A program made the position numbers and the translations under genes. The notes beneath the pieces are model-generated. The model had not been told where the DNA came from. It did not search any database and saw only the letters and a program-made list of their open reading frames with translations. 64,000 nucleotides of DNA, taken from positions 163,248 to 227,247 of IMG/VR virus record IMGVR_UViG_3300025012_000026, one strand, 5' to 3'. The first letter of the stretch is position 1. Every line of letters begins with the position of its first letter. Positions 10,349 to 63,991 of the stretch are shown here, piece by piece.

Positions 10349-10840
10349 TTAAATCCCCACTTCTACCATTGCTCTGTAATCCATCAAAATACTTTTAATT
10401 CCTATGGAATCAACCACTGGATGATCTATTTCTATTTCATTGATCACTATGTGTTTAAATGGGCAAGTTTTAACAATGCCTAGTTTAACTTCACTTCTTG
10501 AAACTTCTAACATATTAACTCTTTCAATATGGAATGCAATCCCAAATTTTATTTTTATTCCCTTTTCTTGGAGAAGATTTAATTCATTTTTGGCATCCAA
10601 TTCATCTGTATATGTATAATATCCATTCGAAAGCGTTTCAGAATAAGAATATATATATCTCCTAATTTGTTTGTCATATGAGATTGAGTTAACTCCTACA
10701 AAATTTCCTCTACTATCTTTTAATACAAATACTTCTAATTCTGTCATTAATTCAACTGCCCCCTTTATATTTTTTAGTGAAACCAAATGCTTGTTCCTTT
10801 CTGAGCATATTTTAGGAACATATATTCTCCCTTTGCCCAA
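10349..10840 (-). CDS. Hypothetical protein
   Basis: ORF track. Confidence 0.55.
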   Translation of the reverse strand: MGKGRIYVPKICSERNKHLVSLKNIKGAVELMTELEVFVLKDSRGNFVGVNSISYDKQIRRYIYSYSETLSNGYYTYTDELDAKNELNLLQEKGIKIKFGIAFHIERVNMLEVSRSEVKLGIVKTCPFKHIVINEIEIDHPVVDSIGIKSILMDYRAMVEVGI

Positions 10841-10992
10841 TTACATTATCCCACTTTGTCCATCCAATTGCAAAACAAAAATTATATGCATATAACCATT
10901 CTTTCGACAAAATAATTTTAAATTAGATTTAATTATTTTTATACTCTCATGTATTTTAAGTTTAGACTGATATAATTGGGTCTACAGTCCCA

Positions 10993-12003
10993 TCACTTAG
11001 GGACTGTAGACTTAGTTTGTGTTTGCTTATAAGTCTCATACATTTCTTTTAATCCTTGCCAACCCCTTTCATCCAATTCTAAGTCTTTAAATAATTGCTT
11101 AAAATCTTCAGATTTTAATTCACCAAGTTCTATTTCTTTTTGTAAACATCTGTCAAGCATACCGGATTGAAATATAAGAGTTGGATTTAAAAATTTAATA
11201 CCTGTATAAGTTCTAAAGTTTTTAAATCTCGAACTTATATTTCCAACAGTAATTTTTTCATCATTGTCACTACTTTTCCTGTCAAGTGTTCTAAGAATAT
11301 ATGGAGTATCTTTAACAGGCATAATAGCAAATCTTCCGGTATCTTCTCCATTTGATTTATGATAAGTGTCTTCAATGCAAGCCATTCGCAATATTTCCAT
11401 AGTCCTTGGATCTACAGTTATAGGTCTTGGTCGAGGATTTTTAATTTTGTCATCTGGATCTCTAGTTATAATAACTATATTTGATTCAGGGTCTAGATCA
11501 CTCATTTTTAGATTTCTTAATTCTTCATAGGTGTGTCCTTTTATTGTTCTGCCTCTGATATTTTCATATAATGATGCCATTAATGCTTTATCGACATAAT
11601 TATACAATCCGTCACAATAATCATACATTTGTTCTCTAGTGATATAGGAATTTCTCTGAGCTACTTGATGGATATATTTTGGTAAATCTTCTTTTTTATC
11701 AACTAATTTCAATACGTTCATTGAACTGTAATTGTTAAATAAACACCAATCAAGATATTGCATGATAATTGTATAAGATACACCTAATGATTTAAGAGAT
11801 TTCTTTTTCATTCCAATTAGTAATTCTTTTACTTCCTCGTAACTAAATTTGCTCAAATCTTTGTTTTTTTCATGCTCGAATCTACTAACACTTTTTAAGA
11901 TAGAGGTATTTGTCACTCTAGTGCTTTCATTAGGATATTTCTCATCAAGAAAACGATTTTTCAATTCTTCGTTAAATAAAGTTCTTTCAATAGTTAATGA
12001 CAT
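10993..12003 (-). CDS. MrpR/YopR-like master repressor with tyrosine-recombinase fold
   Basis: FNEELKNRFL..FEHEKNKDLSKFSYEEV..QYLDWC N-terminus as recalled for SPbeta YopR; HxxR replaced by NPTLIFQSGML; adjacent to a YopQ-like gene. Confidence 0.75.
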   Translation of the reverse strand: MSLTIERTLFNEELKNRFLDEKYPNESTRVTNTSILKSVSRFEHEKNKDLSKFSYEEVKELLIGMKKKSLKSLGVSYTIIMQYLDWCLFNNYSSMNVLKLVDKKEDLPKYIHQVAQRNSYITREQMYDYCDGLYNYVDKALMASLYENIRGRTIKGHTYEELRNLKMSDLDPESNIVIITRDPDDKIKNPRPRPITVDPRTMEILRMACIEDTYHKSNGEDTGRFAIMPVKDTPYILRTLDRKSSDNDEKITVGNISSRFKNFRTYTGIKFLNPTLIFQSGMLDRCLQKEIELGELKSEDFKQLFKDLELDERGWQGLKEMYETYKQTQTKSTVPK

Positions 12004-13358
12004 TATGATACCTCCTTCTGAAGTTGATAAACAACATCTTTAAAATAATCAGAAATCTTTTTAAATGTAGATAAATTTACATGATTTTCGATTCCAATTT
12101 TTTTCCAAATTTTATTTGATTTATCGAAATCTAAAGAGTTTAATACTTTTACTAATCTAGGTTTCCAGTCATCACCATATTCTTGTCTTAATAAATCTCC
12201 TAAAATAATATACCCCATAAACATGTTGTTATGTGCAAGATATGAATTTTCTTTGGTATTAGATAATTCTGTTTTAAACTTTGAATAATTGAGTCCAATA
12301 ATATTATTGAACAACTCTACAATATCATTTTCAACTTGTGCGGTTCTAATAACTGGCTCCTCTTTAAGATCATAAAGAAATTCAATGGATTTTGATAAAG
12401 TATCAAATGTCATTAATTTGTTTTCAATAATCAATTCCTTTTCATTTAAGGCTATACGATTAAACATTTCGTTTGCCCTTTGTCTAGAATTAATAGCTTT
12501 TGCTACTTCCATATTTGGATTGGCTGTATTTTTAAAATCAACCCATTCAGTTTCAATTTGTGTACTTTTACTTTCTTGTCGAATTATTTCATTGGCACGC
12601 TCTTCTGTAACGTGGTGAATATAAATTGATGTAACCCTATCTATGTCATTCTTAATTTCAACAGTTTTTAACATGCCACAGGTTCTATTTGCACCATCAA
12701 TTATGTCTACTAACGTAGACGCATTATCTGGTTCAATTAATAACGTTCTAGTTTTAAGATCATACTTAAACTTTTCTTGTCCATTTATTTTGCGAATGTT
12801 CCACATAATAGCATTAGTGCAAAAAGAACCATCTATCATTGACTCTGTAATTTCTGATACCTTTTTGCTGTCAATATTAATAGATTCAACAATTCTGTTT
12901 CCACTTCGTCTTTTTAAAAGTTGTCTTTGAGTATTTGGATTATATGTTAATAGTCCATTACCCATATAAAGATTAATATTTTGATAAGTTTCCTTTGTAC
13001 ATAACCATTGACTATCATCTATTTGATCGACATTATGAAGTAAAATATACTTAACTTTTTCTTTATCAAGTTTTTTGTAATAATCAGCAGAAGACAATTC
13101 AATCTCTGTAAAGAACTCATCTGGATTTATTTCTGTTCGGTGAGTGTATCCATAAAGATATTTTGTAAATAAACATAGTTCAATTTCTTCAACATAAACC
13201 AAAGGAATTGCTTTAGTGAATATACCTGTAGTTCTGCCCCTCGGTATACCTCTTTCTAATAATTTGCCTATGACTTGCTCTTGAATTTGATTGTCATTTG
13301 AATAATCTTCAATGACTAAATTAAGAATATCCTCAAGAATTTGACGATCTTGTTTCAT
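12003..13358 (-). CDS. YopQ-like protein (DndB/DGQHR ParB-like domain)
   Basis: YNPNTQR and IIDGANR motifs; ~450 aa; stop/start overlap with the repressor gene; start MKQDRQ after RBS AAGGAGG. Confidence 0.7.
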   Translation of the reverse strand: MKQDRQILEDILNLVIEDYSNDNQIQEQVIGKLLERGIPRGRTTGIFTKAIPLVYVEEIELCLFTKYLYGYTHRTEINPDEFFTEIELSSADYYKKLDKEKVKYILLHNVDQIDDSQWLCTKETYQNINLYMGNGLLTYNPNTQRQLLKRRSGNRIVESINIDSKKVSEITESMIDGSFCTNAIMWNIRKINGQEKFKYDLKTRTLLIEPDNASTLVDIIDGANRTCGMLKTVEIKNDIDRVTSIYIHHVTEERANEIIRQESKSTQIETEWVDFKNTANPNMEVAKAINSRQRANEMFNRIALNEKELIIENKLMTFDTLSKSIEFLYDLKEEPVIRTAQVENDIVELFNNIIGLNYSKFKTELSNTKENSYLAHNNMFMGYIILGDLLRQEYGDDWKPRLVKVLNSLDFDKSNKIWKKIGIENHVNLSTFKKISDYFKDVVYQLQKEVS

Positions 13359-13431
13359 AATATTTATTCCTCCTTTTGACATATCAGCAACAAGTTATGT
13401 TGCTATGTATTGGTTAATAATACGCAATGCT

Positions 13432-13530
13432 ATTATAATATATAATATGCCAATACGTCAAGAAGAATGCCTGATTAGTTTTATTATTTATGATTATATC
13501 ATTATAACATTATTGATTGCATAATGTCAA
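13432..13530 (-). promoter_or_regulatory. Tandem sigmaA promoters for the yopQ/mrpR-like operon
   Basis: TTGACA(13530)-18-TATAAT with extended TG, and TTGACG(13461)-18-TATAAT. Confidence 0.6.
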
Positions 13531-13569
13531 ATAATTTATTTTATACACTTGATTATCATATCTCTCACC

Positions 13570-14379
13570 TTAATTAATCATATTCTCATAATCTTGATTC
13601 CCAACATTTTCACAAACCATTTGTGCTGTTTTTTCTTTGCATAAATAATGATTAATTACCATTAGTAACCATGTTAAAAATATTACTGGAATAGATGTTA
13701 TTATAACAATAGCAATTAGTTCATCAATAAATTGTAATTTAATTATAATGCTATTGTTTTCTACTAATTTGTTCATATAATTTACCACTAGAACTCTAGT
13801 TGACAATACTAACAACAAACCACTAATAATAAATTTATTTCTGATAACCGAACTAAATAGATTAATTTTTACTTTGCTGTTTTTTCTAACTAGAATTAAG
13901 GAAACAATACATAGATGCAAAATTTTGATTGGAATGGCCCATAAGATATTGTACATGACATTATCATTAAAAAAACTATATGGCTTATCTAATAACGATA
14001 ATAGAAGTGGACAGTATGCGTATTCTATTATTCCTACAATGACGAAGCTTCCGACTGTATAGATTGCTGTTTTAAATATTAATGATATGTTTATGTCAAA
14101 ACTGTTTGTGATGACTATGTATTCCATTAAGATTATCATTAGAAACATAATTGATAATATAGAATTTTGTTTTGGTACTATGATAATATACTTGAAGATA
14201 TTTGCCATTATTGCTACTGGTAATGCTGTGAGCATAATCCATGTTAGACTACGTTTCCACATTAAAATATCTAGTAGATCATTAATTTTTAAAAGTGATA
14301 ATGCGATGATTACAATGAACATTTGTTCAGGGAGGCCAACAAATATGGTGTTTAGGATGGCATTTGTTATGGATTGCAT
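13570..14379 (-). CDS. Polytopic membrane protein resembling an AgrC/VirS sensor domain, without kinase domain
   Basis: About 7 hydrophobic segments; immediately downstream of agrB; paralog of 16216-17001 (MQSITNAILNTIFVGLPEQMF vs MQGVTNALLNMVLISLPEEIF). Confidence 0.6.
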   Translation of the reverse strand: MQSITNAILNTIFVGLPEQMFIVIIALSLLKINDLLDILMWKRSLTWIMLTALPVAIMANIFKYIIIVPKQNSILSIMFLMIILMEYIVITNSFDINISLIFKTAIYTVGSFVIVGIIEYAYCPLLLSLLDKPYSFFNDNVMYNILWAIPIKILHLCIVSLILVRKNSKVKINLFSSVIRNKFIISGLLLVLSTRVLVVNYMNKLVENNSIIIKLQFIDELIAIVIITSIPVIFLTWLLMVINHYLCKEKTAQMVCENVGNQDYENMIN

Positions 14380-14397
14380 ATGGGTGTTCACTCCTTT

Positions 14398-15030
14398 TTA
14401 TTTTATTTTTGAATCTAGCGCAGAATAAACAATTTGCCCTATTCTGCTTATACTAAATAATTCTAATAATAATCCAAAACAACTTGAAATTACAATAATC
14501 TTTAGATTGAAAAGTAGGGAGATGGTCATTATGATTGTCCATATAAATAGATAATATGATGACCATCTTTTGAATTTTTTGATTTCTAATGGCTCTGTGA
14601 TTGGTTTATTTGGTGTATCTCTAGGTACATAACGATAAATTATATACATTGTCATTACAACACAGAAATTGAATAAATACCACATGTCTATAAATGACCA
14701 ATATTGGAGTGTATATTTGATTAATAATGCTGATCCAATGAACTGAATGGTTGAAAAAGTTATACATTTATTATATTCCCCGAAATGGTATCCACCTGCT
14801 ATGATACGTAAACTACTGAAGGTCAAGGCGATTATTAGGGTAGGAAGCTTTATGCTAAAAATAGATGCTAAAGATACCATTAACATAGCCTTAAAAATAG
14901 CACCCCAAACTACCATGAAACCATATGTGAAAACCTCAATCTGATCTTCTACGGTAGGATATTTATCATTAGGTACTTTTTTTGCTAACCACTTAGCAGA
15001 ATGATTTGATACAAATTCTATAAAACTCAT
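14398..15030 (-). CDS. agrB: AgrB-family peptide maturation protease
   Basis: EVFTYGF; LRIIAGGYH..KC catalytic His/Cys; YVPRDTPNKPI. Confidence 0.95.
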   Translation of the reverse strand: MSFIEFVSNHSAKWLAKKVPNDKYPTVEDQIEVFTYGFMVVWGAIFKAMLMVSLASIFSIKLPTLIIALTFSSLRIIAGGYHFGEYNKCITFSTIQFIGSALLIKYTLQYWSFIDMWYLFNFCVVMTMYIIYRYVPRDTPNKPITEPLEIKKFKRWSSYYLFIWTIIMTISLLFNLKIIVISSCFGLLLELFSISRIGQIVYSALDSKIK

Positions 15031-15057
15031 TAAATTATTTAATCTTCCTTTCTTTTA

Positions 15058-15861
15058 TCATGCATAAGCCACCTGTTGCCCTACACTAGTATAATTATTT
15101 TCTTGTATATTCTGTCTGATTGGTTTAACTTTATTTAGATTTTTCAAAGTCTCTATTGCTTCCTCTTCGTTTACATGTAATTCTAAAATACCCTCAGATT
15201 TCATAAGGGCAATTTCAACTTTCAACATTATATTTGAAGGACATTCAGCGACTTTTTGAAATACTCCATTCTTTCCTATTAATCTTCTTTTTGATATTGT
15301 GTTTGGTAATTCACAACATATAATAGAGTCCTGTGGGATATTACATTCTTTACTGCTTGCGAAAACGTGAGTCGGCATCTTAGCTTTGGATCTAGTTGTC
15401 ATCGCTATGACAATAGAGTTGCTAGAGCAAGCATTCCCCTTATTATTTTGCACCACAAGCACCATTCTTGGGCCGCCTACTTCACTATCTATCCCTTTGT
15501 CACCAAAGTCTGCGAAACAAAAATCTCCTCTTCTGACACGAATATTTTTTATTTGCTCTAAATCATTATTTGCATATAAAGAGTATCCACATGCTATTTT
15601 TAGATCCTGCAACGAAACCCTACCTTCTGAATTATTTGCGAAAACATTGAGGGTTTGAACGTTCGGATAAACATTTATTTTTTCACGAACGATAAGTTCT
15701 ATGTACCCTCCTTCAATTTTGCAGTCTGCTCCAAAATTATTGATTGTCCTATGGGTTCCTTTAGCAAGCATAATTAAACTAGCTAGTTTCTTAAAATCCT
15801 TTTTGGCATTTACCTCAGTGTTGGTGGTATTAGTTGATTTGGCAAATAATTTGTTGAACAT
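15058..15861 (-). CDS. N-terminal HTH-like domain fused to a MazF/PemK endoribonuclease domain
   Basis: C-terminal RRGDFCFADF..SEVGGPRMVLVVQNNKGN..AMTT..KMPTHV..DSIICCE; N-terminus resembles an XRE HTH (RTINNFGADCKI..LKIACGY). Confidence 0.8.
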   Translation of the reverse strand: MFNKLFAKSTNTTNTEVNAKKDFKKLASLIMLAKGTHRTINNFGADCKIEGGYIELIVREKINVYPNVQTLNVFANNSEGRVSLQDLKIACGYSLYANNDLEQIKNIRVRRGDFCFADFGDKGIDSEVGGPRMVLVVQNNKGNACSSNSIVIAMTTRSKAKMPTHVFASSKECNIPQDSIICCELPNTISKRRLIGKNGVFQKVAECPSNIMLKVEIALMKSEGILELHVNEEEAIETLKNLNKVKPIRQNIQENNYTSVGQQVAYA

Positions 15862-15924
15862 AATAATGCACATCCTTTTCATATTTAATAAGATATAAAA
15901 TAATTTTCTTTAACTGATAGTATA

Positions 15925-15954
15925 ATTATATCTTATTATGTATGGATATGTCAA
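15925..15954 (-). promoter_or_regulatory. sigmaA promoter for the HTH-mazF / agrB / sensor operon
   Basis: TTGACA-18-TATAAT. Confidence 0.65.
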
Positions 15955-15993
15955 CATAATTATTTTCAATTGTCTATTAATTTATATTATGGT

Positions 15994-16023
15994 TATAGGA
16001 GAGAACCGAAGTCCTCTCCTATA
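15994..16023 (-). terminator. Stem-loop after agrD (terminator or stabilizing hairpin)
   Basis: Minus strand TATAGGAGAGGAC-TTCG-GTTCTCTCCTATA with UUCG tetraloop; no U-tract. Confidence 0.55.
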
Positions 16024-16040
16024 TGTAAAAGTGATTAAAA

Positions 16041-16160
16041 TTATTTATTTAGACATTTAGGATCTTTTGGTTGATAAGAAAACGCCCAAGAAGCCATATT
16101 TGATGTAAATAGTGCTAACATAGATACTAATCCAGCAAGAACAATATATACTTTCTTCAT
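16041..16160 (-). CDS. agrD: AgrD-like cyclic autoinducing peptide precursor (39 aa, not in ORF track)
   Basis: MKKVYIVLAGLVSMLALFTSNMASWAFSYQPKDPKCLNK*; clostridial AgrD tail YQPKxPKxL; RBS GGAAAGGAGGTGA. Confidence 0.9.
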   Translation of the reverse strand: MKKVYIVLAGLVSMLALFTSNMASWAFSYQPKDPKCLNK

Positions 16161-16215
16161 GTTAATGTCACCTCCTTTCCAAGAATTTATTTATATAACA
16201 AATGCCTTAATCATC

Positions 16216-17001
16216 TTAATCAATAAGATTTTCTTGCGTTTGCTGTATACGTTTTTCTATACCGACTACACAATTTATCATATACCACAACACCATAAGA
16301 AATATAGTTGGTAGACTTAGAATGAATCCTATTGATAATATTTGTTCCCAAATTGGCAATGTGCTTAAGATATTATTATATCCTATCAATTTCACAACAT
16401 AAATTGTAAATAGTGTTAAGAAAGATATTATAAAAATTATCATATTGGTTAATGGTTTATTTTTGAACACTAAATTGTACAATTTGATATTTACTTGTTC
16501 ATTCATCTTAACTATAAAAAATATTATTATTGAGAATTCTAAAATTCTAGAAGGAATTACTAGTAAAAACATATAAGAAATATTTTGATTAAAATATTCA
16601 TAAGGAATTTTTAACAATGAAAACGTTAGTGGCATATAAGCTAATTCAATTAAACTGACTATTATTAGAGTAATCATTGAGTAAACTATGGTTTTAAATA
16701 TTAGTTTATTTTCTTGAGTTATTTCAGTAATTCTTATTATGTAAATAATCGCCAACCAAAATATTATTAATGAGATTATTGATGTTAATAATTTAGGCAA
16801 AATTATAATATACTTAAAAATACTTATACACATTGCCATCAGCAATGAAGGTATTATAATCCACTTAATATTTATTCTCCACATTCTTATGTCAAGTAAA
16901 TCAAATCTTTTGAACAATATTAATGTCATACATGTTACAAATATTTCTTCAGGTAAGGATATAAGAACCATGTTCAATAAAGCATTTGTTACACCTTGCA
17001 T
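16216..17001 (-). CDS. Polytopic membrane protein resembling an AgrC/VirS sensor domain, without kinase domain
   Basis: About 7 TM segments; directly upstream of agrD; paralog of 13570-14379. Confidence 0.6.
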   Translation of the reverse strand: MQGVTNALLNMVLISLPEEIFVTCMTLILFKRFDLLDIRMWRINIKWIIIPSLLMAMCISIFKYIIILPKLLTSIISLIIFWLAIIYIIRITEITQENKLIFKTIVYSMITLIIVSLIELAYMPLTFSLLKIPYEYFNQNISYMFLLVIPSRILEFSIIIFFIVKMNEQVNIKLYNLVFKNKPLTNMIIFIISFLTLFTIYVVKLIGYNNILSTLPIWEQILSIGFILSLPTIFLMVLWYMINCVVGIEKRIQQTQENLID

Positions 17002-17041
17002 ATGTATTACCTCTTTCTTATTCATTTCTTAACCTGTAATA

Positions 17042-17070
17042 AGTATACCATAAGACAAGGTGTAACGCAA
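17042..17070 (-). promoter_or_regulatory. sigmaA promoter for sensor-agrD
   Basis: TTGCGT-17-TATACT with extended TG. Confidence 0.55.
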
Positions 17071-17082
17071 GTATTATTTTAT

Positions 17083-17694
17083 TTATTGATTCATATATAC
17101 CTTATTAATTTCTTTGACTGAACAGTAAACTATTATAAAAGCAAATATTCTTATTAAAATATCACCAATACTCCAAATTGACATACCAAATATATCAAAT
17201 ATATCGGACAAAAATATTAGATTTGTCATATGATCACCTAAAACATGAAAATCATTAAACTTAGAAGCATTCATAATCATATCATACTGAGTGTAACCAG
17301 TTGAATAAGATACATCTGGGAAAATAGGCATCATCCCATGATTAAAGTACATTACAATATAATTCAATACAAATCCACACAAGAGACTACAACAAGCGAT
17401 AATATACTCTTTATACTTCTCATGCCTAAATAGAACATCAAGTCCTAGAATCATATATGATCCTAATATAGCATTCTTTATTATGTGTTGATATTGAAGA
17501 AAGTAGTAATTTTGATTCATTATTGTATATTGTAGATAGATGTAAAATATAGACATTAATATAACTGGATAGATACTCCATCTTTTTAGTATTGGTTTTA
17601 TATTGTATGATTCTTTATGTATTTGGAATTTTCCTAGTTTTATGTAAAGATATATTTTAGAGAATATGAGCGATGCTATTAGTGTCTCGACCAT
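17083..17694 (-). CDS. DUF5317-like membrane protein
   Basis: GFVLNYIVMYFNHGMMP..FLSDIFDI..SIGDILI motifs. Confidence 0.7.
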   Translation of the reverse strand: MVETLIASLIFSKIYLYIKLGKFQIHKESYNIKPILKRWSIYPVILMSIFYIYLQYTIMNQNYYFLQYQHIIKNAILGSYMILGLDVLFRHEKYKEYIIACCSLLCGFVLNYIVMYFNHGMMPIFPDVSYSTGYTQYDMIMNASKFNDFHVLGDHMTNLIFLSDIFDIFGMSIWSIGDILIRIFAFIIVYCSVKEINKVYMNQ

Positions 17695-17754
17695 TTATTG
17701 TATTATCTCCTTTGTATTATTTTGTAATAATTTATTTATTTACAATCATGTATT

Positions 17755-19491
17755 CTACGGAGGTTTATTATTTTGATCTTTAATCATATTCTCATAATCT
17801 ACTAAATACATCCATTTAAGTAATTCACCAGTCTCAAGATCTTTACCACATGTTTTTTGTTTATTTTTGCAACATCTTCCAATTCCGACACGATTTATAT
17901 TATATTCTTTTGATGCGTTTGCAATAGAATTGAATACTTTGTTTGTTGTCAAACATATTATCTTCATATCTCTTGAACTATGTAGTATATACTTTATTTC
18001 TTGTTTATCTTTAAAAATATATTCTTCGTAATACATCCAAACCATCTTTTCCCCTGTTTCGGGATGTTTTCCTGCCGATTTTTGTATACCTAAACAACAT
18101 GATGAAATATCACTATTCCTTATATTATACTTACTTGTTGCATCAGTTATAGAATTAAAAATTTCATTAGTTGTTAAACAAACAACTTTTGTTTGCATTA
18201 CTTCTTTAGTATCATAATCACACCACCCCAATTCTACACCTTGTTTTAAATATCTAGAAACTGTAGAGGTATGAACCTTTATTATATCTGCTATTTCTAC
18301 AGTCCTTTTAATTCCACTATTCCATAAATTACATGAAATTTTAACTAAACTTGAACATCCAGCCTCATGACACTTCAACCAATCTATATCTTTTTCTTTA
18401 AAATTAAGTAATATGGGCAATCTAGACCTCATTATGCTATTCTTTATCCACTCTAACTCAGACTTTCTACAATCGATTATTATGTAATTATTAATATTGT
18501 TTGTTCTCGCTAACCACTCTTTATCAAAATCATTTTCCTGAACTTCTGCTAATGAAACTTTCCAATTACCTGTTATTTCTTCATAATGCTGAATTCCTTG
18601 AATTTCAATGACAATTTTATCTAATTTTTCTATGTAAAAATCATATCTGTATCCACCACACCATTTAAAAGTTATTTTACTCAATTGAGATTTAAAATTT
18701 AGATGTAATTGTTCTAAAAAAGATAGAAAGAACTTCTCTGGATAACTCACACCATCGGAACATCTAGGGCAAGCAAATCCATGTACTACTAAGGTGCTAA
18801 AATTTAAATTTTTATCATATCCACAATCTGGACATTTCATAGGTATTTTTGGATTTGATCCAAAAGAATGTTTATTTGCATCTTCTTTATTTACCAAATA
18901 CTTAATTAAATGTGGATGAGTTGTCACAACCATATTACACATATTGCAATCAAGACTTCCATTTTGTCCATTTGTAAAACTACTAATACTTTTTAATTCA
19001 CTTTCATGTTCTGGATGTTCTAAACACTTAAACCAATAACCTTTTTTATTAAAACCTGCGGAACTAAAGCTTACATCATTAGGGCTTAATACTTTCCCAT
19101 TTTTTATATTTTTTGCATCATCCCATCTAGATAATATCCAATCTGCCAATTCTTTAGGGAGATTATCGTAACACCATTGATAAAAAGATTTACTATTTTT
19201 TAATTTTGTAATTCTTCCATTTTCACTCACAAACAGTTTTATGGCACATTTTATACAATAATATTTTTCACCCTCATGTCTTAAATCTATATAATGTCGC
19301 CATATGACATTTTTTATAATTTCTCCGCAACCATCACACTGAATATCGACTAATGCGTGTGAACTATGAGGTAAATCCTCTACTTTCACTTCGAATTCAT
19401 TGCCCATTTTTGTAAAGATATAATCTCTTTGTTCATAATATTTTTTAATACTTGCATTCCATTTCATTTTTACGGTTTTAGTTATTAACAA
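17755..19491 (-). CDS. Free-standing homing-endonuclease-like protein (Zn ribbons, Vsr/PD-(D/E)XK-like nuclease, NUMOD1 repeats)
   Basis: Several CxxC pairs; SYPEKF..YRYDFYI..IEIQGIQHY; two C-terminal VCLTTN.FNSI.A repeats. Confidence 0.7.
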   Translation of the reverse strand: MLITKTVKMKWNASIKKYYEQRDYIFTKMGNEFEVKVEDLPHSSHALVDIQCDGCGEIIKNVIWRHYIDLRHEGEKYYCIKCAIKLFVSENGRITKLKNSKSFYQWCYDNLPKELADWILSRWDDAKNIKNGKVLSPNDVSFSSAGFNKKGYWFKCLEHPEHESELKSISSFTNGQNGSLDCNMCNMVVTTHPHLIKYLVNKEDANKHSFGSNPKIPMKCPDCGYDKNLNFSTLVVHGFACPRCSDGVSYPEKFFLSFLEQLHLNFKSQLSKITFKWCGGYRYDFYIEKLDKIVIEIQGIQHYEEITGNWKVSLAEVQENDFDKEWLARTNNINNYIIIDCRKSELEWIKNSIMRSRLPILLNFKEKDIDWLKCHEAGCSSLVKISCNLWNSGIKRTVEIADIIKVHTSTVSRYLKQGVELGWCDYDTKEVMQTKVVCLTTNEIFNSITDATSKYNIRNSDISSCCLGIQKSAGKHPETGEKMVWMYYEEYIFKDKQEIKYILHSSRDMKIICLTTNKVFNSIANASKEYNINRVGIGRCCKNKQKTCGKDLETGELLKWMYLVDYENMIKDQNNKPP

Positions 19492-19558
19492 TTAGCAACA
19501 CCTTTTTGCCAATTGTTAATAACTTTATATTTTTCAATAAACATCCTTCTCCTTTTAT

Positions 19559-19981
19559 TTATGCATACACAATATTCTTATCTTTCTGACCTATTGAGAA
19601 TTGAATAAGTATACCTTGATTTATACGTTCCATAGTTTCAGAATTACAATATCCAACTTTCTTCAAAAATATATCTTCATTTTTGTTAACTAACATAACT
19701 TGTTCACAGAGAGCAATAGAATCTCTTAATAGTCCTGAAGAGTTTTTATTTATGCTTTTGTGAGTTGGTAATTTTGACTTCGTGCCGATAGAACTAATTG
19801 GACATATATGCACAACTGGACTGTAGCGATTTGCCATATTATTACTTACAATTATGCATGGACGCAATTTTCCTTGGATAGATCCCTTGCCTTCTCCTAG
19901 ATCAACTAACCATATCTCTCCTCGATTAAATTGTTGTGGTTGTTGAACATTATTTATTACATTTTGCATAATAATTATCAC
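19559..19981 (-). CDS. mazF: MazF/PemK family endoribonuclease with no adjacent antitoxin
   Basis: RGEIWLVDL..GSIQGKLRPCIIVSNNMANRYSP..KLPTH..RDSIALCEQ. Confidence 0.9.
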   Translation of the reverse strand: MIIIMQNVINNVQQPQQFNRGEIWLVDLGEGKGSIQGKLRPCIIVSNNMANRYSPVVHICPISSIGTKSKLPTHKSINKNSSGLLRDSIALCEQVMLVNKNEDIFLKKVGYCNSETMERINQGILIQFSIGQKDKNIVYA

Positions 19982-20093
19982 TCCTTCTTATTTAACCTTG
20001 TGATAATTATTATTCCCCACAGCTTGGATAATATACGTTGTCCAACAAAACTTTTATTTCTACATTCTAATCACCCCCTTACATTCTAATACT

Positions 20094-20364
20094 TTACCAC
20101 CATAAACTAGGCAAACACAATGCAAATATATTAACTATATCTTCTACTTTTTCTTTCTGCTCGTCAGTCCTTTTCATTGTACATAGATAATCTTTCATAT
20201 AACCATAGTTTAAATGTGAAGTCCATTGACCAAGTTTCTTTTTCATCAAAACCATATATTTCTCTTTCTTTAATCCATCGTTCTTGCCTTGAATCATCTT
20301 TATTCCAACCTTGAGGAGTATTGTCTTCTAATATACCAAGGTCTTTAAGATATTTACCTAACAT
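20094..20364 (-). pseudogene. Probable frameshifted or internally deleted phage gene
   Basis: Frame 1 (MLGKYL..GFDEKETW..LYERLSMYNEKD*) overlaps a second frame with a protein-like C-terminus ..IVNIFALCLPSLWW. Confidence 0.45.
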
Positions 20365-21071
20365 TTATTTTCCTCCTCTAACCCCTTAAATGCCATAATA
20401 GCAACCTCTAATTGTTCCACACTTGGTTCCTTTGTGAAAATATATTTCTGCAATAAACTTCCTACAAAATAAATTGGCTTAACAAACCACTTAATAATCC
20501 TATTATCAGATCTCATTACTTCATATGTAATTCCCCATCCTAATAACATTGCTCCAGAATGAACTAATGAAACTAATAATCCACTAATTATAATTAATCC
20601 AATATACAAATTAGTTCCACAATTATCATTTACACAACTTTGATTCATTGATGTTTCAATCGACACTTTACCATTTATTTCGTAATCATTTACCACTTTA
20701 TGTTCTGCTCCATGATAATATTTCGTTTTACTACATTTATTAAATAACAACATAAAAATAGGCAATATAATGAAATTATGATAGTTACTGTTTTGTAGAC
20801 TGCTTGGTTCAAAATTGTATAGACCATAAGAATAAATAAGACTTAGTGCCAATAATAACAAACCAAATTTTGTAAAAATTAATTTTAATATAATCCAATA
20901 TGCTCTAGCAAAAGGTATTCTGTAAAGAAAATTCTCTAAAATATTTTGCTTATCATCTTTGAGTATTTTATTTACAATAATATTATTGCCTTTTCTTATT
21001 GCTGTTGAAGTATGAGTTTCTGATTCAAACATTACATTATTGTATCCTGCTCTACCACCTAGTAAATTCAT
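20358..21071 (-). CDS. DUF1385 (YqhQ-like) membrane protein
   Basis: GGRA, RIPFAR, YHGAEHK, CGTN, TKEPSVEQLEVA. Confidence 0.85.
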   Translation of the reverse strand: MNLLGGRAGYNNVMFESETHTSTAIRKGNNIIVNKILKDDKQNILENFLYRIPFARAYWIILKLIFTKFGLLLLALSLIYSYGLYNFEPSSLQNSNYHNFIILPIFMLLFNKCSKTKYYHGAEHKVVNDYEINGKVSIETSMNQSCVNDNCGTNLYIGLIIISGLLVSLVHSGAMLLGWGITYEVMRSDNRIIKWFVKPIYFVGSLLQKYIFTKEPSVEQLEVAIMAFKGLEEENKC

Positions 21072-22210: not shown

Positions 22211-22567
22211 TCATCTACATAACTTTAAATTTTTTAACCAATTTAATTCTTTTGGAAAATCATCATAATCGATAATTCCCATATTAATACATGTCAATGT
22301 ATTAGGTTCTAAATCCGTCCATCCTCTATCTCTGATAGCGATATAACCTTTAACTTCTAATTCCTCTAATTTTGATTGCGGAGCATAAAGAATAATTTTC
22401 TTTTGATAATTCGTCATATATAATTCAATAGTTGAATCGTATTCCTTACTCTCATCAATCATAAAATTATAAAAATATACTGCTACTGCGTGTCCGACTT
22501 GACCTGCAAGTTTTCCTTTATTGATTTCAATATCTTCATTAACTAATATATACATTCTTAAATCCAT
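22211..22567 (-). CDS. Peptidyl-tRNA hydrolase Pth2-like
   Basis: MYILVNEDIEINKGKLAGQVGHA..QKKIIL..IRDRGWT..PNTLTC..LKL. Confidence 0.85.
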   Translation of the reverse strand: MDLRMYILVNEDIEINKGKLAGQVGHAVAVYFYNFMIDESKEYDSTIELYMTNYQKKIILYAPQSKLEELEVKGYIAIRDRGWTDLEPNTLTCINMGIIDYDDFPKELNWLKNLKLCR

Positions 22568-22777
22568 AATTAAATCTCCTATCAATCTCTAAAAATCAAT
22601 TCTTTATCTTGATAATCCTGACTAATAACTTCATACTTAAACTCAGTCAATATTGCATAATTTCTACAAGTCCTTCATTTTCTTGATTAAAAGACACCCA
22701 AATTACTTCTTTTATATTTGTGTCTTTACTTTTACAGTAAGGGCATGGGATGTTGTTTATCATTATTTACTCCTTTT

Positions 22778-22984
22778 CTAACATGGATAACCTTCATGTA
22801 ATTCATCTCTTGAATCAGTATAAAAACTTTCTTGATACATGTCGCACTCTTCATTATCGCATTTGAAAATATCTCCCTCTTTCTCTATCCAAGATTGAGG
22901 GTACGACCAATAATGTTCTGCTACTTGACGCTTACCATAGTAATCTGTGCATTTTAATTCATAACTACAATATGGACATTCCAT
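22778..22984 (-). CDS. Small Zn-finger protein
   Basis: MECPYC..CDNEEC..LHEGYPC. Confidence 0.6.
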   Translation of the reverse strand: MECPYCSYELKCTDYYGKRQVAEHYWSYPQSWIEKEGDIFKCDNEECDMYQESFYTDSRDELHEGYPC

Positions 22985-23069
22985 AAAAAAATATCACATC
23001 CAAATCTTTATCAGGAAGATATACTTCGTTTATCTCCATATATCTTCCATTTACTCCACTTTCTAAATC

Positions 23070-24779
23070 TTATTTCAAAACTCTCGCTCTAATTTCTGCT
23101 AAACTTTCATCTCTTACTAATTTTCCATCAATAAATACATCTTCAAGTAAATCAATAATATCAATTGCATCTTTTTCCATTTCATTTAATCCATCAACCA
23201 AATAGATACCATTTTCACCATCAACTACTGCAACCATTCCTTTTTGAGATTTTTTGATTCCACCAATATCGGTTTTAGGATCTTTAAAGATAAACTTTTC
23301 AACTCCATCAATAACCGTATAAGTGGCCTTTAAAGCGAACGAAAATGTGTCTCTGGTGTGATAACCTAAAGAATAACTTCCAACTCCGTATACGATGTTT
23401 TCTGCTGAAAACCCCTTTGCTTCTAATTGTTTGAAAGTTTCTTCTGCAATTTCTGGACTTATGCTATCTCCATATATTAAGCCCACATGACTATCTAGTA
23501 CCTTATACCCTTTACTATTAATAGTTCCTCCAAAGGTATCCCATAATGCTTCTACAGAACCCTTTTGCTCTATAGTTAATTTTACTTCTTTACAAATATG
23601 AACATTAGCACCATCAATATAATAATATTGTTTATCATGTCTATTCCAATCAATTTCAATAACAATTTCATAATGCTTATCTTGAAATTTAAAAATTGCA
23701 TCTTGCCTAGAAATACCATGTTCTCCATGAGGTGTATCATTTCTTATATCGTCAATTATTCTCTCCAACATAATTTCCTTGCAATCTTCCAGATTATCAC
23801 AATATTCTTCATTGGTTAAATCTTCAACAATCACATTACCGCAAATAATCTTTATTGGACTTCCAGAATCAGGACGAATGACACACTTACCATTTCTACT
23901 CATAATATCATCTTTCAATGAAGGTAAAATATTCCCCAAGACATTAAAATAATCATACCCATCACTAACTATACTTACAATTCCACTAGGGGCAACTTCA
24001 GTAATCATTCTCTTAAAATATCTCAAATCATCTTGATATCCACATTGAATACTATGTTCCGTTGCTAACACACTTGCTGAAACTAATTCCTTTTCCACAT
24101 TAACACCATAATATTGCTCTAAATATTGAATACTTGGAATCGTATCACTACCAGTAAAATATAATAAATGTCCTGCTCCTGTAGTTACTGCATCTTCATG
24201 ACCACTCATACCTCTATAACTAAAATTATGACATTGCCATTGAATATGATCTTTACTATCACATGTTTTCTCAGCCCACTTTTCACAAATGTCTCTATAT
24301 TTCTTTACAATTGTTGTTGCAGTAATTACTTTCCACATATTTGCGGAAATCAATGTCTCTAAGAAATTAGTCAACCAATAGAACTCTTTTTTAGTATTTT
24401 CAATTGTAAACACAGGAACTTTCATTGGAATCAATGTGCCTTCTTTTACTGCCTTGATTTTAATAGGAAGGTATCCTAAATCATGTAATGCTTCAATATG
24501 AGTTGTATCTGCACAATTATCTCCTAGAGAATTTTTAATGATTCTTTTATAATCTGCAACTACTATTGATTTATCAACATTGAAAAAGTTTTCATTGAAA
24601 TTATCAATTAGATAATCTTTAATAAATCCTTGTAAACCAAAGAATACTACTTCATTAATTCCTTCAATTCTTGAATGTCTAGGCGTAAATGTAGAATAAA
24701 TTTTTTCTGTACCTTTTTCACTCATAATGAGGTGGCTTATTTTGTACGAATCTGTCATTAACATTGGATTTGTTTTCAT
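23070..24779 (-). CDS. Nicotinamide phosphoribosyltransferase-like (Namat-like in NARP1 context)
   Basis: TDSYKISH, FFGLQ, HNFSYRG, ATEHS, SIVSDGYD, VIRPDSG, GLIYGDSI, KDPKTD..KKSQKG. Confidence 0.92.
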   Translation of the reverse strand: MKTNPMLMTDSYKISHLIMSEKGTEKIYSTFTPRHSRIEGINEVVFFGLQGFIKDYLIDNFNENFFNVDKSIVVADYKRIIKNSLGDNCADTTHIEALHDLGYLPIKIKAVKEGTLIPMKVPVFTIENTKKEFYWLTNFLETLISANMWKVITATTIVKKYRDICEKWAEKTCDSKDHIQWQCHNFSYRGMSGHEDAVTTGAGHLLYFTGSDTIPSIQYLEQYYGVNVEKELVSASVLATEHSIQCGYQDDLRYFKRMITEVAPSGIVSIVSDGYDYFNVLGNILPSLKDDIMSRNGKCVIRPDSGSPIKIICGNVIVEDLTNEEYCDNLEDCKEIMLERIIDDIRNDTPHGEHGISRQDAIFKFQDKHYEIVIEIDWNRHDKQYYYIDGANVHICKEVKLTIEQKGSVEALWDTFGGTINSKGYKVLDSHVGLIYGDSISPEIAEETFKQLEAKGFSAENIVYGVGSYSLGYHTRDTFSFALKATYTVIDGVEKFIFKDPKTDIGGIKKSQKGMVAVVDGENGIYLVDGLNEMEKDAIDIIDLLEDVFIDGKLVRDESLAEIRARVLK

Positions 24780-24780
24780 A

Positions 24781-25281
24781 TTATTTTACCTCTTTCTTAT
24801 TCATATTATTTAAATACTCAGCAACTTCTTCTAACGATTTAAAATACATTCCACCATTTCTTTCTACTATTAATCCGACCTGATTTAAAGATTTCATTTC
24901 TCCAATTGAAAAATTAATCTTATCATTTGGATAATTAATTTTATCTATAAACATATTAATATCAGGACTTCCAAGATAGCACATTGGATTTGGTACTTGT
25001 GTAATTATTGGAACTTCAGAATTTAATATACAAAATATAGTTTTTCCAGGACGTTTGTTGCTATCATCTATAACTTCTGCAATACTATAGACTCCACTCA
25101 TAGACGGAGTAATTACATATAAACAATAATCACATGTTTCACGTTGTCTACGCTCTTCTATCATACATTCTTCAGTCCAATCCTCTACAACTGGATTAAA
25201 ATAGTTAATATTAAGCATTGGAATTAATTTGTCTCTCCATATACTATTATTACAAGTACCGCCAAGGAATACTTTACTCAT
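24781..25281 (-). CDS. Nucleoside 2-deoxyribosyltransferase-like protein
   Basis: VFLGGTCNNSIWR..YFNPVVEDW..GVYSIAE. Confidence 0.75.
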   Translation of the reverse strand: MSKVFLGGTCNNSIWRDKLIPMLNINYFNPVVEDWTEECMIEERRQRETCDYCLYVITPSMSGVYSIAEVIDDSNKRPGKTIFCILNSEVPIITQVPNPMCYLGSPDINMFIDKINYPNDKINFSIGEMKSLNQVGLIVERNGGMYFKSLEEVAEYLNNMNKKEVK

Positions 25282-25284
25282 GAC

Positions 25285-26109
25285 TTAATTACCTTCTTTC
25301 ATAATTTTATATACTTCAATTTTATCATTTAATGATTCATTCATAATAGTATCTGTAGTGAAAACTTTATCAATCAAGTCTGTTTTAAATACATCGCCTT
25401 TGTAAATTGATTCCTCGCAATGTCCAACAACAAGATAAATTTCAGAAGCTCCAAGTTCTTTAAGTTGTTTTGCACCAAGCAAAAATGTTCCTCCATAACT
25501 TGATAAGTCATCCAACATTATTACTTTAAATCCTTTTTTCTTAACATCTCCAAAAACTTGAAGACTAGTAATTTTACCTGTTTGAAAATCTCTATGTTTA
25601 AATCCAACTAATTGATTTGGAACGCCAATCATTTTACTATAACGTTTCTCACTCGAAGCATCTGGGAAATAAACATAATCAGTATCATCATTGAAATTAA
25701 TTTTGTCTTTAATATCATAAAAAATATCTACAGATAGGAATCTACTTTTACAATTATTTAATAATGCAGGAGTTACATCAGAATGTGGTTCCAATACATG
25801 AATATAATCAAACCCTAAATTATTAATAAATTCTGCAATATATTTTAGTGTAAATGCTGAACCTCCTTCCGATCTATCCATTCTACTGTATGGCATGTAC
25901 ATGATATGTAGATTACAATTTATTTTTAATTGGTCTAGATATTTCTTTAAGAACAATAGTTTAATCAAGTCTGCATCTGATTGATACTTAAATGTAGTTA
26001 ACGAATTATTAACACCTCCTAAAATCTCATTAATTTGTTGTTCATTGAGTTTTGTTTCCCCATTTGGGAATGTAGTAAAATCTAATAGTTTGTTATTTAA
26101 CCAAATCAT
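25285..26109 (-). CDS. Ribose-phosphate pyrophosphokinase-like (Adps-like)
   Basis: FPNGE, YMPYSRMDR, EPHS, FPDASSEKRY, KHRDFQTG, LDDLSSYGGTF; start MIWLNNK after RBS. Confidence 0.9.
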   Translation of the reverse strand: MIWLNNKLLDFTTFPNGETKLNEQQINEILGGVNNSLTTFKYQSDADLIKLLFLKKYLDQLKINCNLHIMYMPYSRMDRSEGGSAFTLKYIAEFINNLGFDYIHVLEPHSDVTPALLNNCKSRFLSVDIFYDIKDKINFNDDTDYVYFPDASSEKRYSKMIGVPNQLVGFKHRDFQTGKITSLQVFGDVKKKGFKVIMLDDLSSYGGTFLLGAKQLKELGASEIYLVVGHCEESIYKGDVFKTDLIDKVFTTDTIMNESLNDKIEVYKIMKEGN

Positions 26110-26205
26110 TTTGTTTCCTCCTGAAATATTTATTTCTATATTCATACTACCACAATTTAGCATAATAAGTCAAGTTTAATTTAAACATCCTTTAAAATTT
26201 GATTT

Positions 26206-43369: not shown

Positions 43370-43930
43370 TTATAAGTTAAGTTCCATGTATACATCGTCT
43401 AATTCATCTTGAGTAATACCGATATATCGCAACGTTTCCTTTGGAGAAGAATGATTTAAAATGGACTGAATTATAACAATATCTACCCCTGCAATATACG
43501 CATGATAACCCATGCTTTTTCTAAGGCTGTGACTCCCAATATTTTCCTTTACACCACAAGATCGTGCTGCTTTATTAATGATGCGATATGCGTGTTGTCT
43601 AGTAATCGGTTCGTTTCCTTTTCTAGAGGAAAATAGAACTGTTTCTGGTTTACTAAATGTAATATATTCCGTCAATGCTTGTAATGCGTTTGCAGACAAA
43701 GGAAAACTTTTTGTTTTAGATGTCTTCTTTTCTTTTACAATCAACCTATCTCTAACCTTACCTTTTTCGTCTACTACGTCCGAAACGTTAAATTTAAGTA
43801 AGTCAGATATTCTTAATCCAGAATTAATTCCTAATACAAATAACGCCCAATCTCTAAGACTTTGAGATTTTAAATAGATTTTCATCTCTTCGATCTTCTT
43901 CTTATCTCGGATTGGTTCTACTGTTTCCAC
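43370..43930 (-). CDS. Small tyrosine recombinase (catalytic domain only)
   Basis: GLRISD, EKKT, HSLRKS, LNHSS..TLRYIG: intact R-K-H-R-H-Y set; GTG start with RBS AAGGAGG. Confidence 0.92.
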   Translation of the reverse strand: METVEPIRDKKKIEEMKIYLKSQSLRDWALFVLGINSGLRISDLLKFNVSDVVDEKGKVRDRLIVKEKKTSKTKSFPLSANALQALTEYITFSKPETVLFSSRKGNEPITRQHAYRIINKAARSCGVKENIGSHSLRKSMGYHAYIAGVDIVIIQSILNHSSPKETLRYIGITQDELDDVYMELNL

Positions 43931-61850: not shown

Positions 61851-63991
61851 TTAATGATATTTTTCTGATGCAATAGAAGAATCAATATTCATTCCCTTAA
61901 TTTTATCTTTCCATTTTTTAACCTCTTCATTATTTAGATATCCCGTATTAAGACATTCTCCGTCTACAAACAATGCTCTTCCAGACCTAAACAATTTGTT
62001 ATACTTAATATGATCATTGACATATTCATCCCTAACAATATTTACTACATGACTCCCATTTGCATAAACTCCTACAGAAATATGATTCACAATAATCATC
62101 CTCCATTTATTAAACTAATTTATGCTTCAACAAAAACTTGATTTGCTTATCCGTCAAAGTATCAATATCTAAATCTATAATTCTTTCATCACTACCTAAT
62201 TTTACCCAACCTAAGACTTCCAACAATCTTTCTGCACACCAAGGATGAGTATTGGTTAAGGGATCGATGATATTAAAACTAATCTCATTCCAATCTGCTA
62301 TTTCTTCAGCCTTTTTATAATGAGAAAGCAAATTGAAAGTGCTGTAAAATTTACCTTCAGGGGATAACCAACCGTTCATTAATTCACTCTCCTTTGGATT
62401 TAATTTAGTAACCAATACTATGATATAAACCCACAAACCCATATGCTCTGCTGTTATAGCGAATATGGGCTTAAATCACTAGCACAGATTAATAATAACC
62501 ATAGAATCCCATAAGGTAATTGTTATACATTTTGTTAAGATCGTCTGATGTAACCAAATTGCCTGAAAGTGTTTGAAAATATTCTTTCTTTGTTAGTGGT
62601 TTCTTTTCAACTTTATACTCGTTCATTTTAAATTAACTCCTTTCTTCACTCCGTTAAGTTTTACTTTTTATAGACTCTCTCCGCAAGCAGGACAAAAGAA
62701 CTCTACTTCACCTGATTCTAGGTTAATGTTCATTTCAAAATTTTCAAAACTAGTTTTACAGTTTGGGCATACCACTTTTGTCATATTATTGCACCTCCTA
62801 TTTTTTGATACCACCTAGCAGGATTGTTATGAACCCTGCTAACGCTCTGAGCTTAAGGCGTTTTATACTGGATCAGACCAGTTAATTTATTCCTTCCAAT
62901 AATTAACCCAAGCTAACTTTATAGAATCAACTGTTGAATTACTATCAACTACTACATTAAAACCATTAAAAATGCCTCCAATGGAGAAATCATTTCTTTG
63001 ATTTCTTTTAACCATTCTGTCCCATATTTCAAACAATCTTTCCACATACTCAATAAAAGATTCCATGTCAAATGGTTCAAATGTTCTTGCTAACATATTA
63101 ATACACTCTCCCTTAATTTAATTCTGCTTTCTAGTAAGCTTGCTTTCATGCTAATTTTCTTATGTCAATACTTCAATTCCAAATCCACCATCTAATGCTT
63201 CTATAACTTCTTCTAAACTATCACATTCAAGACTGTCCCAACCTTCAAGTCCTCTATCATCATCCATTAATATTAGGTATTTAATTACTTTGTCTACTGG
63301 TATTTTATCAATAATATCTTTTCTTTGATGTCTGTCGTTAACCTCATACTTTTTATCAGTCTTTTCTGAGAGGAAATCAATAAAAGCATATTTATCAATC
63401 TTTTCTCTCTCGATTAGCCATTTACCCTGTTCCTGGTCATACTCACTGTTATATCCCTCTAACACTCTACTAATCCAAAAGTCATTGGTATCCATACATA
63501 TAAATAACTTCTTATAGTAGTCTTTTGCATAGGAGAATAATTCACCTTTATCAATTAGTTGATTCATTTTACTTGTAACATCATAATATTTTGCAAATTT
63601 CATTTTATCATTTCCTTTCTAATTTAGAATAAGTTAAATAATAGACTTATGGGATAATTACCTATACCACTTCACAATTGACAAATAAAATCCAAATCCA
63701 TAAATATATTGATCACCATTTACAATTGCTTGCTTGAATTTATAAACCACGACAATATGCCTCCAATTCTTCAATTTGTTTTACGTGCTCATTGTAAACA
63801 TAATCAATATCAATAAAAGTATTTGAATCATATAGGCTAAAATCATAATTCTTCAAATGTGCTTTTGTTAATCCATCTAATAATATTTCAATCGCTTGAA
63901 CATCCTTATCCATTATAGCATTGTGAAGTTCATTGTTATACATAGAACGATATAGAATATACTCATTTTTAGACTGTAAACCACTTTGCAT
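61851..63991 (-). other. Small hypothetical ORFs (61851-62099, 62110-62442, 62887-63096, 63160-63603, 63740-63991)
   Basis: ORF track and RBSs. Confidence 0.55.

Follow-up and report, generated by a model that had tools for sequence, protein, structure and literature searches.

Two MazF-type ribonuclease (RNase) genes were analyzed in a 64,000-nt stretch of DNA ('the window') from the IMG/VR virus record IMGVR_UViG_3300025012_000026, which comes from an SPbeta-like temperate phage of roughly 146 kb with a low-GC anaerobe, probably Clostridium, as its host. Both encoded proteins keep the catalytic positions of MazF, and neither gene is accompanied by a recognizable MazE gene. The longer protein is fused to an XRE/Cro-type helix-turn-helix (HTH) domain, and the two share a conserved C-terminal tail. 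The genes lie in a module with Agr-type peptide-signaling genes, next to SPbeta-type repressor genes that are free of the MazF site UACAUA, a hexamer enriched across the phage. The reading to which an even chance is given is that these phage-borne, peptide-linked MazF RNases bias the lysis-lysogeny decision, as a variant of the arbitrium-MazEF circuit. The record scanned was 146,043 bp (estimated 88% complete), and the window corresponds to its reverse strand, positions 61743-125742; G+C content of the window was 29%, with nearly all genes on the minus strand. The contig of one related phage was binned with a Clostridium metagenome-assembled genome (MAG), and the host assignment is weak because the search of representative genomes gave this one binned contig only. 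No near-identical phages or close relatives were found in the phage collection searched.

Two MazF proteins with a conserved tail and no recognizable antitoxin

Both open reading frames (ORFs) of the original prediction, 15058-15882 and 19559-19981, were found on the minus strand, with likely starts at internal ATG codons after Shine-Dalgarno sites (15861 for the long MazF, 267 aa; 19969 for the short MazF, 136 aa). Both proteins matched PHROG 1936 ('MazF-like growth inhibitor') and Pfam PemK_toxin (long protein, residues 117-228, E 1.7e-17; short protein, E 6.4e-24). An AlphaFold model of the long protein matched 4hke, 4mdx and 9g7k in Foldseek (E about 1e-11, target-normalised TM-score 0.85-0.91), and its MazF core showed 37-38% identity to Bacillus and Staphylococcus MazF structures. 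R132 of the long and R36 of the short protein aligned to the catalytic R25 of Bacillus MazF, and T155 and S59 to T48 of B. subtilis MazF. The conserved Arg expected in both proteins was thus located at the R25 position; it was invariant across both families, and the Thr position was held by Ser or Thr. R132, T155, a PTH motif and E184 were invariant or nearly so over 46 long homologues, with equivalent positions kept in the short family. The conserved catalytic positions in both families argue for retained catalysis, and RNase activity is predicted for both MazFs. Sequence-specific RNA cleavage is indicated indirectly, by the distribution of UACAUA in the phage. The original prediction had proposed regulatory RNases or dominant-negative partners of host MazF. 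Regulatory RNases fit, because the catalytic residues are kept and the genes sit in a signaling and repressor module, not in an addiction cassette; dominant-negative partners are unsupported, as the active site is conserved and no loss-of-function signature was seen. PADLOC gave no defense-system match for the MazFs or their neighbors.

The N-terminal HTH-like domain of ~105 aa and the C-terminal extension that had been ascribed to the long protein were borne out by fold comparison and by the model. The N-terminal 105 residues had no Pfam or PDB match by sequence, and fold comparison alone identified the domain. It consists of five helices (predicted local distance difference test score, pLDDT, about 90 across residues 20-90), its best structural neighbor in VIA-align was 2ofy_B (Z 9.9, root mean square deviation 2.7 A over 76 residues), and XRE/Cro/C1 proteins made up nearly all of the top structural neighbors. 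Stand-alone relatives of the domain amounted to four fragments on short contigs. At the other end of the protein, residues 232-244 form a confident extra helix after the MazF core, followed by a disordered tail.

Promoters were sought on the coding strand of window 10800-20500 using the sigma-70 consensus (perfect = 12/12), and only two perfect matches were obtained (15954-15925 and 13530-13501). The first lies upstream of the long MazF gene, with -35 and -10 boxes conserved in six loci, and agrB starts 27 nt past the long MazF stop codon, in agreement with the earlier proposal that this gene heads the agrB operon. Immediately upstream of the short MazF gene, the search gave no convincing consensus promoter. 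A 13-bp perfect inverted repeat overlaps the -10 box and 5' leader of the long MazF promoter, and it was partly conserved or co-varying in three related loci (L003, L004 and L007); no further copies of the arm were found in the window, e.g. upstream of the short MazF gene. The HTH domain may use the repeat as its operator, and the long protein, a putative single-chain regulator and toxin, would thereby probably repress its own promoter. The HTH domain and the candidate operator over the -10 box would also suit a long protein that is mainly a transcription factor, with its MazF fold used for dimerization or for ligand or RNA sensing. This reading, along with its variant in which both proteins are inactive partners that poison host MazF, is considered very unlikely in view of R132, T155, the PTH motif and E184, all near-invariant in the 46 homologues, and of their equivalents in the short family.

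The similar ends of the two MazFs (QQVAYA and KNIVYA) were confirmed and proved to be conserved among homologues. Nearly all of the 46 full-length long homologues (40-93% identity) end [Q/R]-Q-V-A-[F/Y/C]-A, and those with Cys for the aromatic residue usually have an extra aromatic residue appended (e.g. ACAY or ACAF). Most short homologues end N-N-[V/I]-A-Y-A, at times plus one residue; one that lacks the tail (P0063) has a homing-endonuclease ORF overlapping the 3' end of its MazF gene. The phage has about 240 sense-strand ORFs of >=60 aa, of which the two MazFs alone bear the tail; it is not present on unrelated phage MazFs either. The tail is beyond chance because it is conserved in 46 long and most short homologues and occurs on no other phage ORF, and it stands out because the MazF cores are only 27% identical. 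A degron is a plausible function. The transfer-messenger RNA tag of the Clostridium MAG (candidate host) is ANDNLALAA, which NNVAYA and QVAFA tails resemble, and the likeness of NNVAYA to the tag is suggestive only. The tails lack the terminal AA of an ...ALAA-type tag, and some homologues append one or two residues. Homologues also differ in their exact C-terminus (AYA, AFA, ACAY, AYAN), a variability that is uncommon in C-terminal degrons of the ClpX type. A degron-like tail on toxins would be the reverse of the labile-antitoxin/stable-toxin arrangement.

A MazE-like neighbor had been reported absent for both genes, and the flanking ORFs indeed gave no antitoxin-family match in Pfam or PHROG. 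The refuting observation named in the original prediction, a cognate antitoxin adjacent or in trans, was not made, as none was recognized in the neighbors or in the 146-kb record. Profiles PF04014 (MazE/AbrB) and PF20605 (Antitox_RHH, ribbon-helix-helix) had no match across the record, and neither ToxI-like tandem repeats nor an Rfam antitoxin RNA was found. The adjacent cognate antitoxin (an AbrB- or RHH-type MazE) by which type II MazEF is recognized was thus missing. The gene upstream of the short MazF was different in each of five related phages, and these genes were mutually unrelated. At this position in the window (20094-20364, minus strand), two ORFs (66 and 67 aa) overlap in different frames and may be one frameshifted gene; they showed weak matches to two different PHROGs of unknown function and had no homologue in related loci.

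That the genes form a classical module (toxin-antitoxin, abortive infection or addiction) with an unrecognized antitoxin is doubtful. Such an antitoxin could be an RNA, a small AimX/YosL-like phage protein or, in cis as in fused systems (cf. EzeT, CapRel), the HTH domain or the C-terminal extension; the long protein has a conserved acidic helix following its MazF core, which would be in keeping with this. Addiction would be useful for relatives such as Clostridium phage c-st, which has a plasmid-like prophage lifestyle. The small MazE-mimicking inhibitors of phi3T (PMC10769878) would escape sequence searches, and a non-homologous inhibitor of that kind may be present here as well. On the other side, the conserved MazF-adjacent genes encode membrane proteins and AgrB/AgrD only, a MazE or RHH family match occurs nowhere in the record, homologues of AimX and phi3T_92-94 were not found, and the conserved tail is on the toxin, not on an antitoxin. 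If the MazFs are instead regulatory RNases, their activity would probably be limited, without MazE, by transcriptional control together with the conserved tail, whose role could be that of an ssrA-like degron or of a motif for docking or autoinhibition.

An Agr-MazF module upstream of SPbeta-type repressor genes

Adjacent YopQ-like and MrpR-like genes lie immediately downstream of the Agr-MazF module, in the same order as phi3T_96-phi3T_97 (Table 1). MrpR/YopR/SroF is the SPbeta master repressor (PMC10516654). The aimR-aimP-aimX genes of phi3T are directly upstream of the yopQ-yopR repressor operon, and Agr and the MazFs are found at the corresponding place here; tblastn of the phage gave no homologues of phi3T AimR, AimP, AimX or phi3T_92-95. 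In phi3T, arbitrium works via host MazE-MazF, and active MazF favors lysogeny (PMC10769878; PMC10516654). AimX and YosL inhibit MazF and phi3T_93 releases it; how active MazF then promotes lysogeny is called uncharacterised (PMC10769878). Short tandem repeats (periods 7, 8 and 21 nt) occupy window 13434-13588, in the gap holding the YopQ-like/MrpR-like promoter, and may be repressor sites.

Module order was compared in related contigs of 36-202 kb, and was short MazF, DUF5317, a polytopic membrane protein of ~270 aa, an ORF of 38-43 aa, long MazF and AgrB, followed sometimes by a second membrane protein, then by a DndB-like and an MrpR-like gene. DUF5317, membrane protein, AgrD, long MazF, AgrB, then YopQ and MrpR were present in all five related loci, and the short MazF in four of the five (not L007). 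AgrD was conserved across the five; its five-residue Ser/Cys ring precedes a QPxxPxC motif. AgrB homologues were not found by tblastn in the phage collection. A G+C-rich hairpin follows agrD; it has no U-tract, and its stem is conserved among six phages with changes on both sides. A regulated terminator is located between aimP and aimX in phi3T (PMC10769878). TM1, the membrane protein encoded directly upstream of AgrD, matched nothing in NCBIfam, PDB or PADLOC, and nothing convincingly in the ESM Atlas. A more specific version of the circuit, free of kinases, can be drawn from these genes: the AgrB/AgrD peptide would be sensed by TM1, its paralogue TM2 and DUF5317, which would act on the MazFs through the shared tail, by membrane sequestration or handover to a protease. 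This version is thought quite unlikely; if true, an extracellular peptide would switch an RNase without antitoxin or two-component system, and so set lysogeny.

A homing-endonuclease-like gene is inserted between the short MazF and DUF5317, and was absent from the same place in L003, L004 and L008. A related endonuclease is found at this place in L017 (L017:7374-9020), with a C-terminal stretch identical to that of the 17755-19491 gene; its ORF overlaps the MazF gene 3' end, and that MazF is without the conserved tail.

Table 1. Coordinates of the MazF genes, their domains and control elements, and neighboring genes in the window.
Feature	Position	Strand	Details
MrpR/YopR/SroF-like master repressor homologue	10993..12003	-	336 aa; Pfam MrpR_N_CB E 2e-17; tblastn with phi3T_97 E 1.5e-27; 0 UACAUA
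YopQ/SroE-like (DndB-like) protein	12003..13382	-	459 aa; vs phi3T_96 E 4e-16; 0 UACAUA
Second perfect sigma-A promoter	13501..13530	-	Extended -10; upstream of YopQ-like and MrpR-like genes
TM2	13570..14391	-	TM1 paralogue, 39% identity; starts 6 nt after agrB
AgrB peptidase	14398..15030	-	Pfam AgrB E 1.4e-34
Long MazF	15058-15861	-	267 aa; HTH, MazF core and C-terminal extension
C-terminal extension of long MazF	15061..15195	-	Conserved acidic helix 232-244, Y/Q/N-rich linker, tail QQVAYA (15061-15078)
MazF/PemK core of long MazF	15196..15537	-	Residues 109-222, with R132 and T155
XRE/Cro-type HTH domain	15547..15828	-	About residues 12-105 of long MazF; from fold comparison
13-bp perfect inverted repeat	15886..15938	-	Arms 15926-15938 and 15886-15898; overlaps -10 box and 5' leader
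Consensus sigma-A promoter of long MazF-agrB-TM2 operon	15925..15954	-	TTGACA, 18 nt, TATAAT; 12/12
G+C-rich hairpin after agrD	15994..16023	-	No U-tract; stem conserved among six phages
AgrD-type autoinducing peptide precursor	16041..16160	-	39 aa; TIGR04223 E 2.4e-7, 30.8 bits vs cut-off 19
TM1, polytopic membrane protein	16216..17025	-	269 aa; directly upstream of AgrD, position conserved; without kinase domain
DUF5317 membrane protein	17083..17694	-	Pfam E 1.9e-18; synteny
Homing-endonuclease-like gene	17755..19491	-	578 aa; PHROG HNH/homing endonucleases
Short MazF	19559..19969	-	136 aa; R36 and S59 kept; tail KNIVYA
PTH2 peptidyl-tRNA hydrolase	22211-22585	-	
NAMPT-like nicotinamide phosphoribosyltransferase	23070-24779	-	From synteny with Pfam-annotated homologues in related loci only
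Nucleoside 2-deoxyribosyltransferase-like gene	24781-25281	-	
Phosphoribosyl pyrophosphate (PRPP)-synthetase-like gene	25285-26163	-	

Just upstream of the MazF module is an auxiliary gene cluster (window 22211-26163, minus strand; Table 1), to which related phages add a fusion of polynucleotide kinase, phosphatase and RNA ligase. Located beside RNases, such functions in RNA repair and ribosome rescue may be connected with the MazFs. Elsewhere in the window, a Pistol ribozyme was identified at 62809-62882 on the minus strand (Rfam RF02679, 55.3 bits vs gathering score 34.5), and a short (186-aa) tyrosine-recombinase-domain protein is encoded at 43370-43930 (minus strand). Outside the window, in the structural gene block, a ClpP-family protease (G000:C1:3867-4292, minus strand; one TAA within the match) is probably the prohead protease. 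No PDZ domains were found in the phage. Across the whole phage record, GGACC/GGTCC had a count of 0 against about 13-14 expected each, and AGATCT, GATC, GAATTC and other palindromes were under-represented; this shortage suggests restriction avoidance.

Distribution of UACAUA sites

The strict cleavage hexamer of Bacillota MazF is U^ACAUA (bioRxiv 10.64898/2026.08.06.743204). Of 2785 sense-strand hexamers assessed in the phage under a maximal-order Markov model, TACATA was the most over-represented (137 observed vs 102 expected, z 5.4), with a z score above that of AAGGAG. Coding regions contained 103 sites, distributed over all three frames, as against 62.4 ± 6.2 in synonymous-codon shuffles (z 6.6; 0/500 shuffles reached 103). 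No excess was seen for the reverse complement or for three near-variants of UACAUA. Related phage loci, which are not fully independent samples in these counts, held 65 sites vs 33 (z 6.2). As a positive control, phi3T gave 50 sites vs 19.5 (z 7.8), in agreement with the published MazF-site enrichment in phi3T and SPbeta transcripts (bioRxiv 10.1101/2023.04.27.537455). Site avoidance as a form of phage self-immunity was ruled out, since the sense strand showed no depletion of UACAU or UACAUA.

In the window, the YopQ-like and MrpR-like genes contained no sites; in the five related loci, 11,835 nt of these genes held none either, against about 16 expected from the flanking density. The phi3T yopP, yopQ and yopR genes (3390 nt) were also site-free, as were the same genes in c-st and phage Perkons. 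Long MazF genes were site-poor (1 in 3936 nt vs 5.3 expected). Enrichment together with a site-free repressor is the pattern expected if MazF cuts damp lytic expression while the repressor is spared.

Solitary PHROG 1936 genes without annotated antitoxin are common in phages, including virulent Herelleviridae, in line with a reading of the present MazFs as host-takeover toxins, which would halt host translation in lytic infection, unneutralised in a doomed cell that needs no antitoxin. This role is judged unlikely: the Bacillus-type MazF site is enriched in the phage and not avoided, the genes sit in the repressor and signaling region, in a phage whose master repressor is of the SPbeta type, and the copy with the fused DNA-binding domain lies behind an operator-like repeat.

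Proposed circuit and its relation to known systems

Under the lysis-lysogeny reading, the MazFs would cut phage transcripts at a UACAUA-like site that is enriched phage-wide and missing from the repressor genes, so that MazF activity would damp lytic expression, spare the repressor and favor lysogeny. An Agr-type cyclic-peptide system (AgrB, AgrD and membrane proteins without kinase) would stand in place of arbitrium and be linked to the MazFs. Several points weigh against this reading. The phage is known only from metagenomes, and the interpretation is based on sequence throughout. No integrated phage copies were found among 185,579 representative genomes, and with an integrase-type recombinase present in the phage, lysogeny itself is a prediction. 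Neither an AgrC histidine kinase (PF14501) nor an AgrA LytTR domain (PF04397) was found in the record (estimated 88% complete), and no known sensor family was matched by the membrane proteins. The inverted repeat was weak or absent in 2 of 6 loci. Some short homologues have no tail and L007 has no short MazF, so neither the short MazF nor the tail is indispensable. A host MazF, and not the phage copies, may be what the UACAUA distribution is adapted to; for the phage copies, UACAUA is a presumed site.

The closest parallel considered was the arbitrium-MazEF system of phi3T/SPbeta (PMC10769878; bioRxiv 10.1101/2023.04.27.537455). In both, a peptide system is immediately upstream of a repressor operon ending in YopQ/YopR (SroE/SroF), and a MazF RNase would be the lever, with transcripts enriched in sites and repressor genes free of them (phi3T was counted here). 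The peptide system differs, being AgrB/AgrD with a cyclic peptide here and AimR/AimP there, and no AimX, YosL or SroA/B homologues were found here. Two MazFs, one of them HTH-fused, are encoded by the phage, whereas in phi3T/SPbeta MazF is borrowed from host MazEF. The chromosomal MazEF (EndoA/EndoAI, ndoA) of Bacillus/Staphylococcus shares the fold and the catalytic Arg and Thr with the proteins described here, which differ in being phage-encoded, without a MazE gene, and in having an HTH domain (long protein), a C-terminal helix and a conserved tail.

For the c-st comparison, annotation, translation and Pfam scan of a few regulatory-region ORFs, and motif counts were used. CST027 of c-st, a 'MazF-like growth inhibitor', is also longer than usual (220 aa) and lies two genes upstream of the YopQ/YopR homologues, and a second, short MazF is encoded elsewhere in that phage. 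Unlike the long MazF of the window, CST027 has no HTH domain, its extension is C-terminal only and its tail ends SASC, and c-st has neither AgrB nor AgrD. MazF genes without annotated antitoxin were located in c-st at L011:5936-6598 and L022:35554-35952, and in the SPbeta-like phage Perkons at L009:3266-3628 (tail LSAC). The tails of the long c-st MazF (SASC) and the Perkons MazF (LSAC) are small or hydrophobic.

A solitary MazF is also found in Myxococcus xanthus, where MazF-mx is controlled by the transcription factor MrpC (PMC2701414). MazF-mx resembles the present proteins in having no adjacent antitoxin, in being recruited to a developmental or regulatory decision and in being tied to a transcription factor; it differs in that the DNA-binding domain is fused in cis here and the setting is a phage with peptide signaling. 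In the Clostridioides difficile phage phiCDHM1, agrD and agrB are reportedly accompanied by a complete agrC kinase, and we know of no MazF link reported for it. As so described, it is unlike the phage studied here, where no kinase domain was found and agrB is paired with MazF. Common to both phages is the presence of Agr-type quorum-sensing genes, described for phiCDHM1 in PMC4124054.

A literature search found no paper on an XRE-MazF fusion, an Agr-MazF module or site-free repressor genes. To date, the only phages shown to control lysogeny through MazF are Bacillus arbitrium phages, which use host MazEF. How a toxin can be restrained without an antitoxin could be studied with the XRE-MazF fusion and the conserved toxin tail. 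Site-free repressor genes would provide a simple, testable explanation for MazF favoring lysogeny, the step uncharacterised in phi3T (PMC10769878). If the reading is true, the combination of peptide signal, MazF, site-rich lytic genes and site-free repressor would be a general SPbeta-like design and not a Bacillus peculiarity, and clostridial phages would share it, relatives of the toxin-converting c-st among them.

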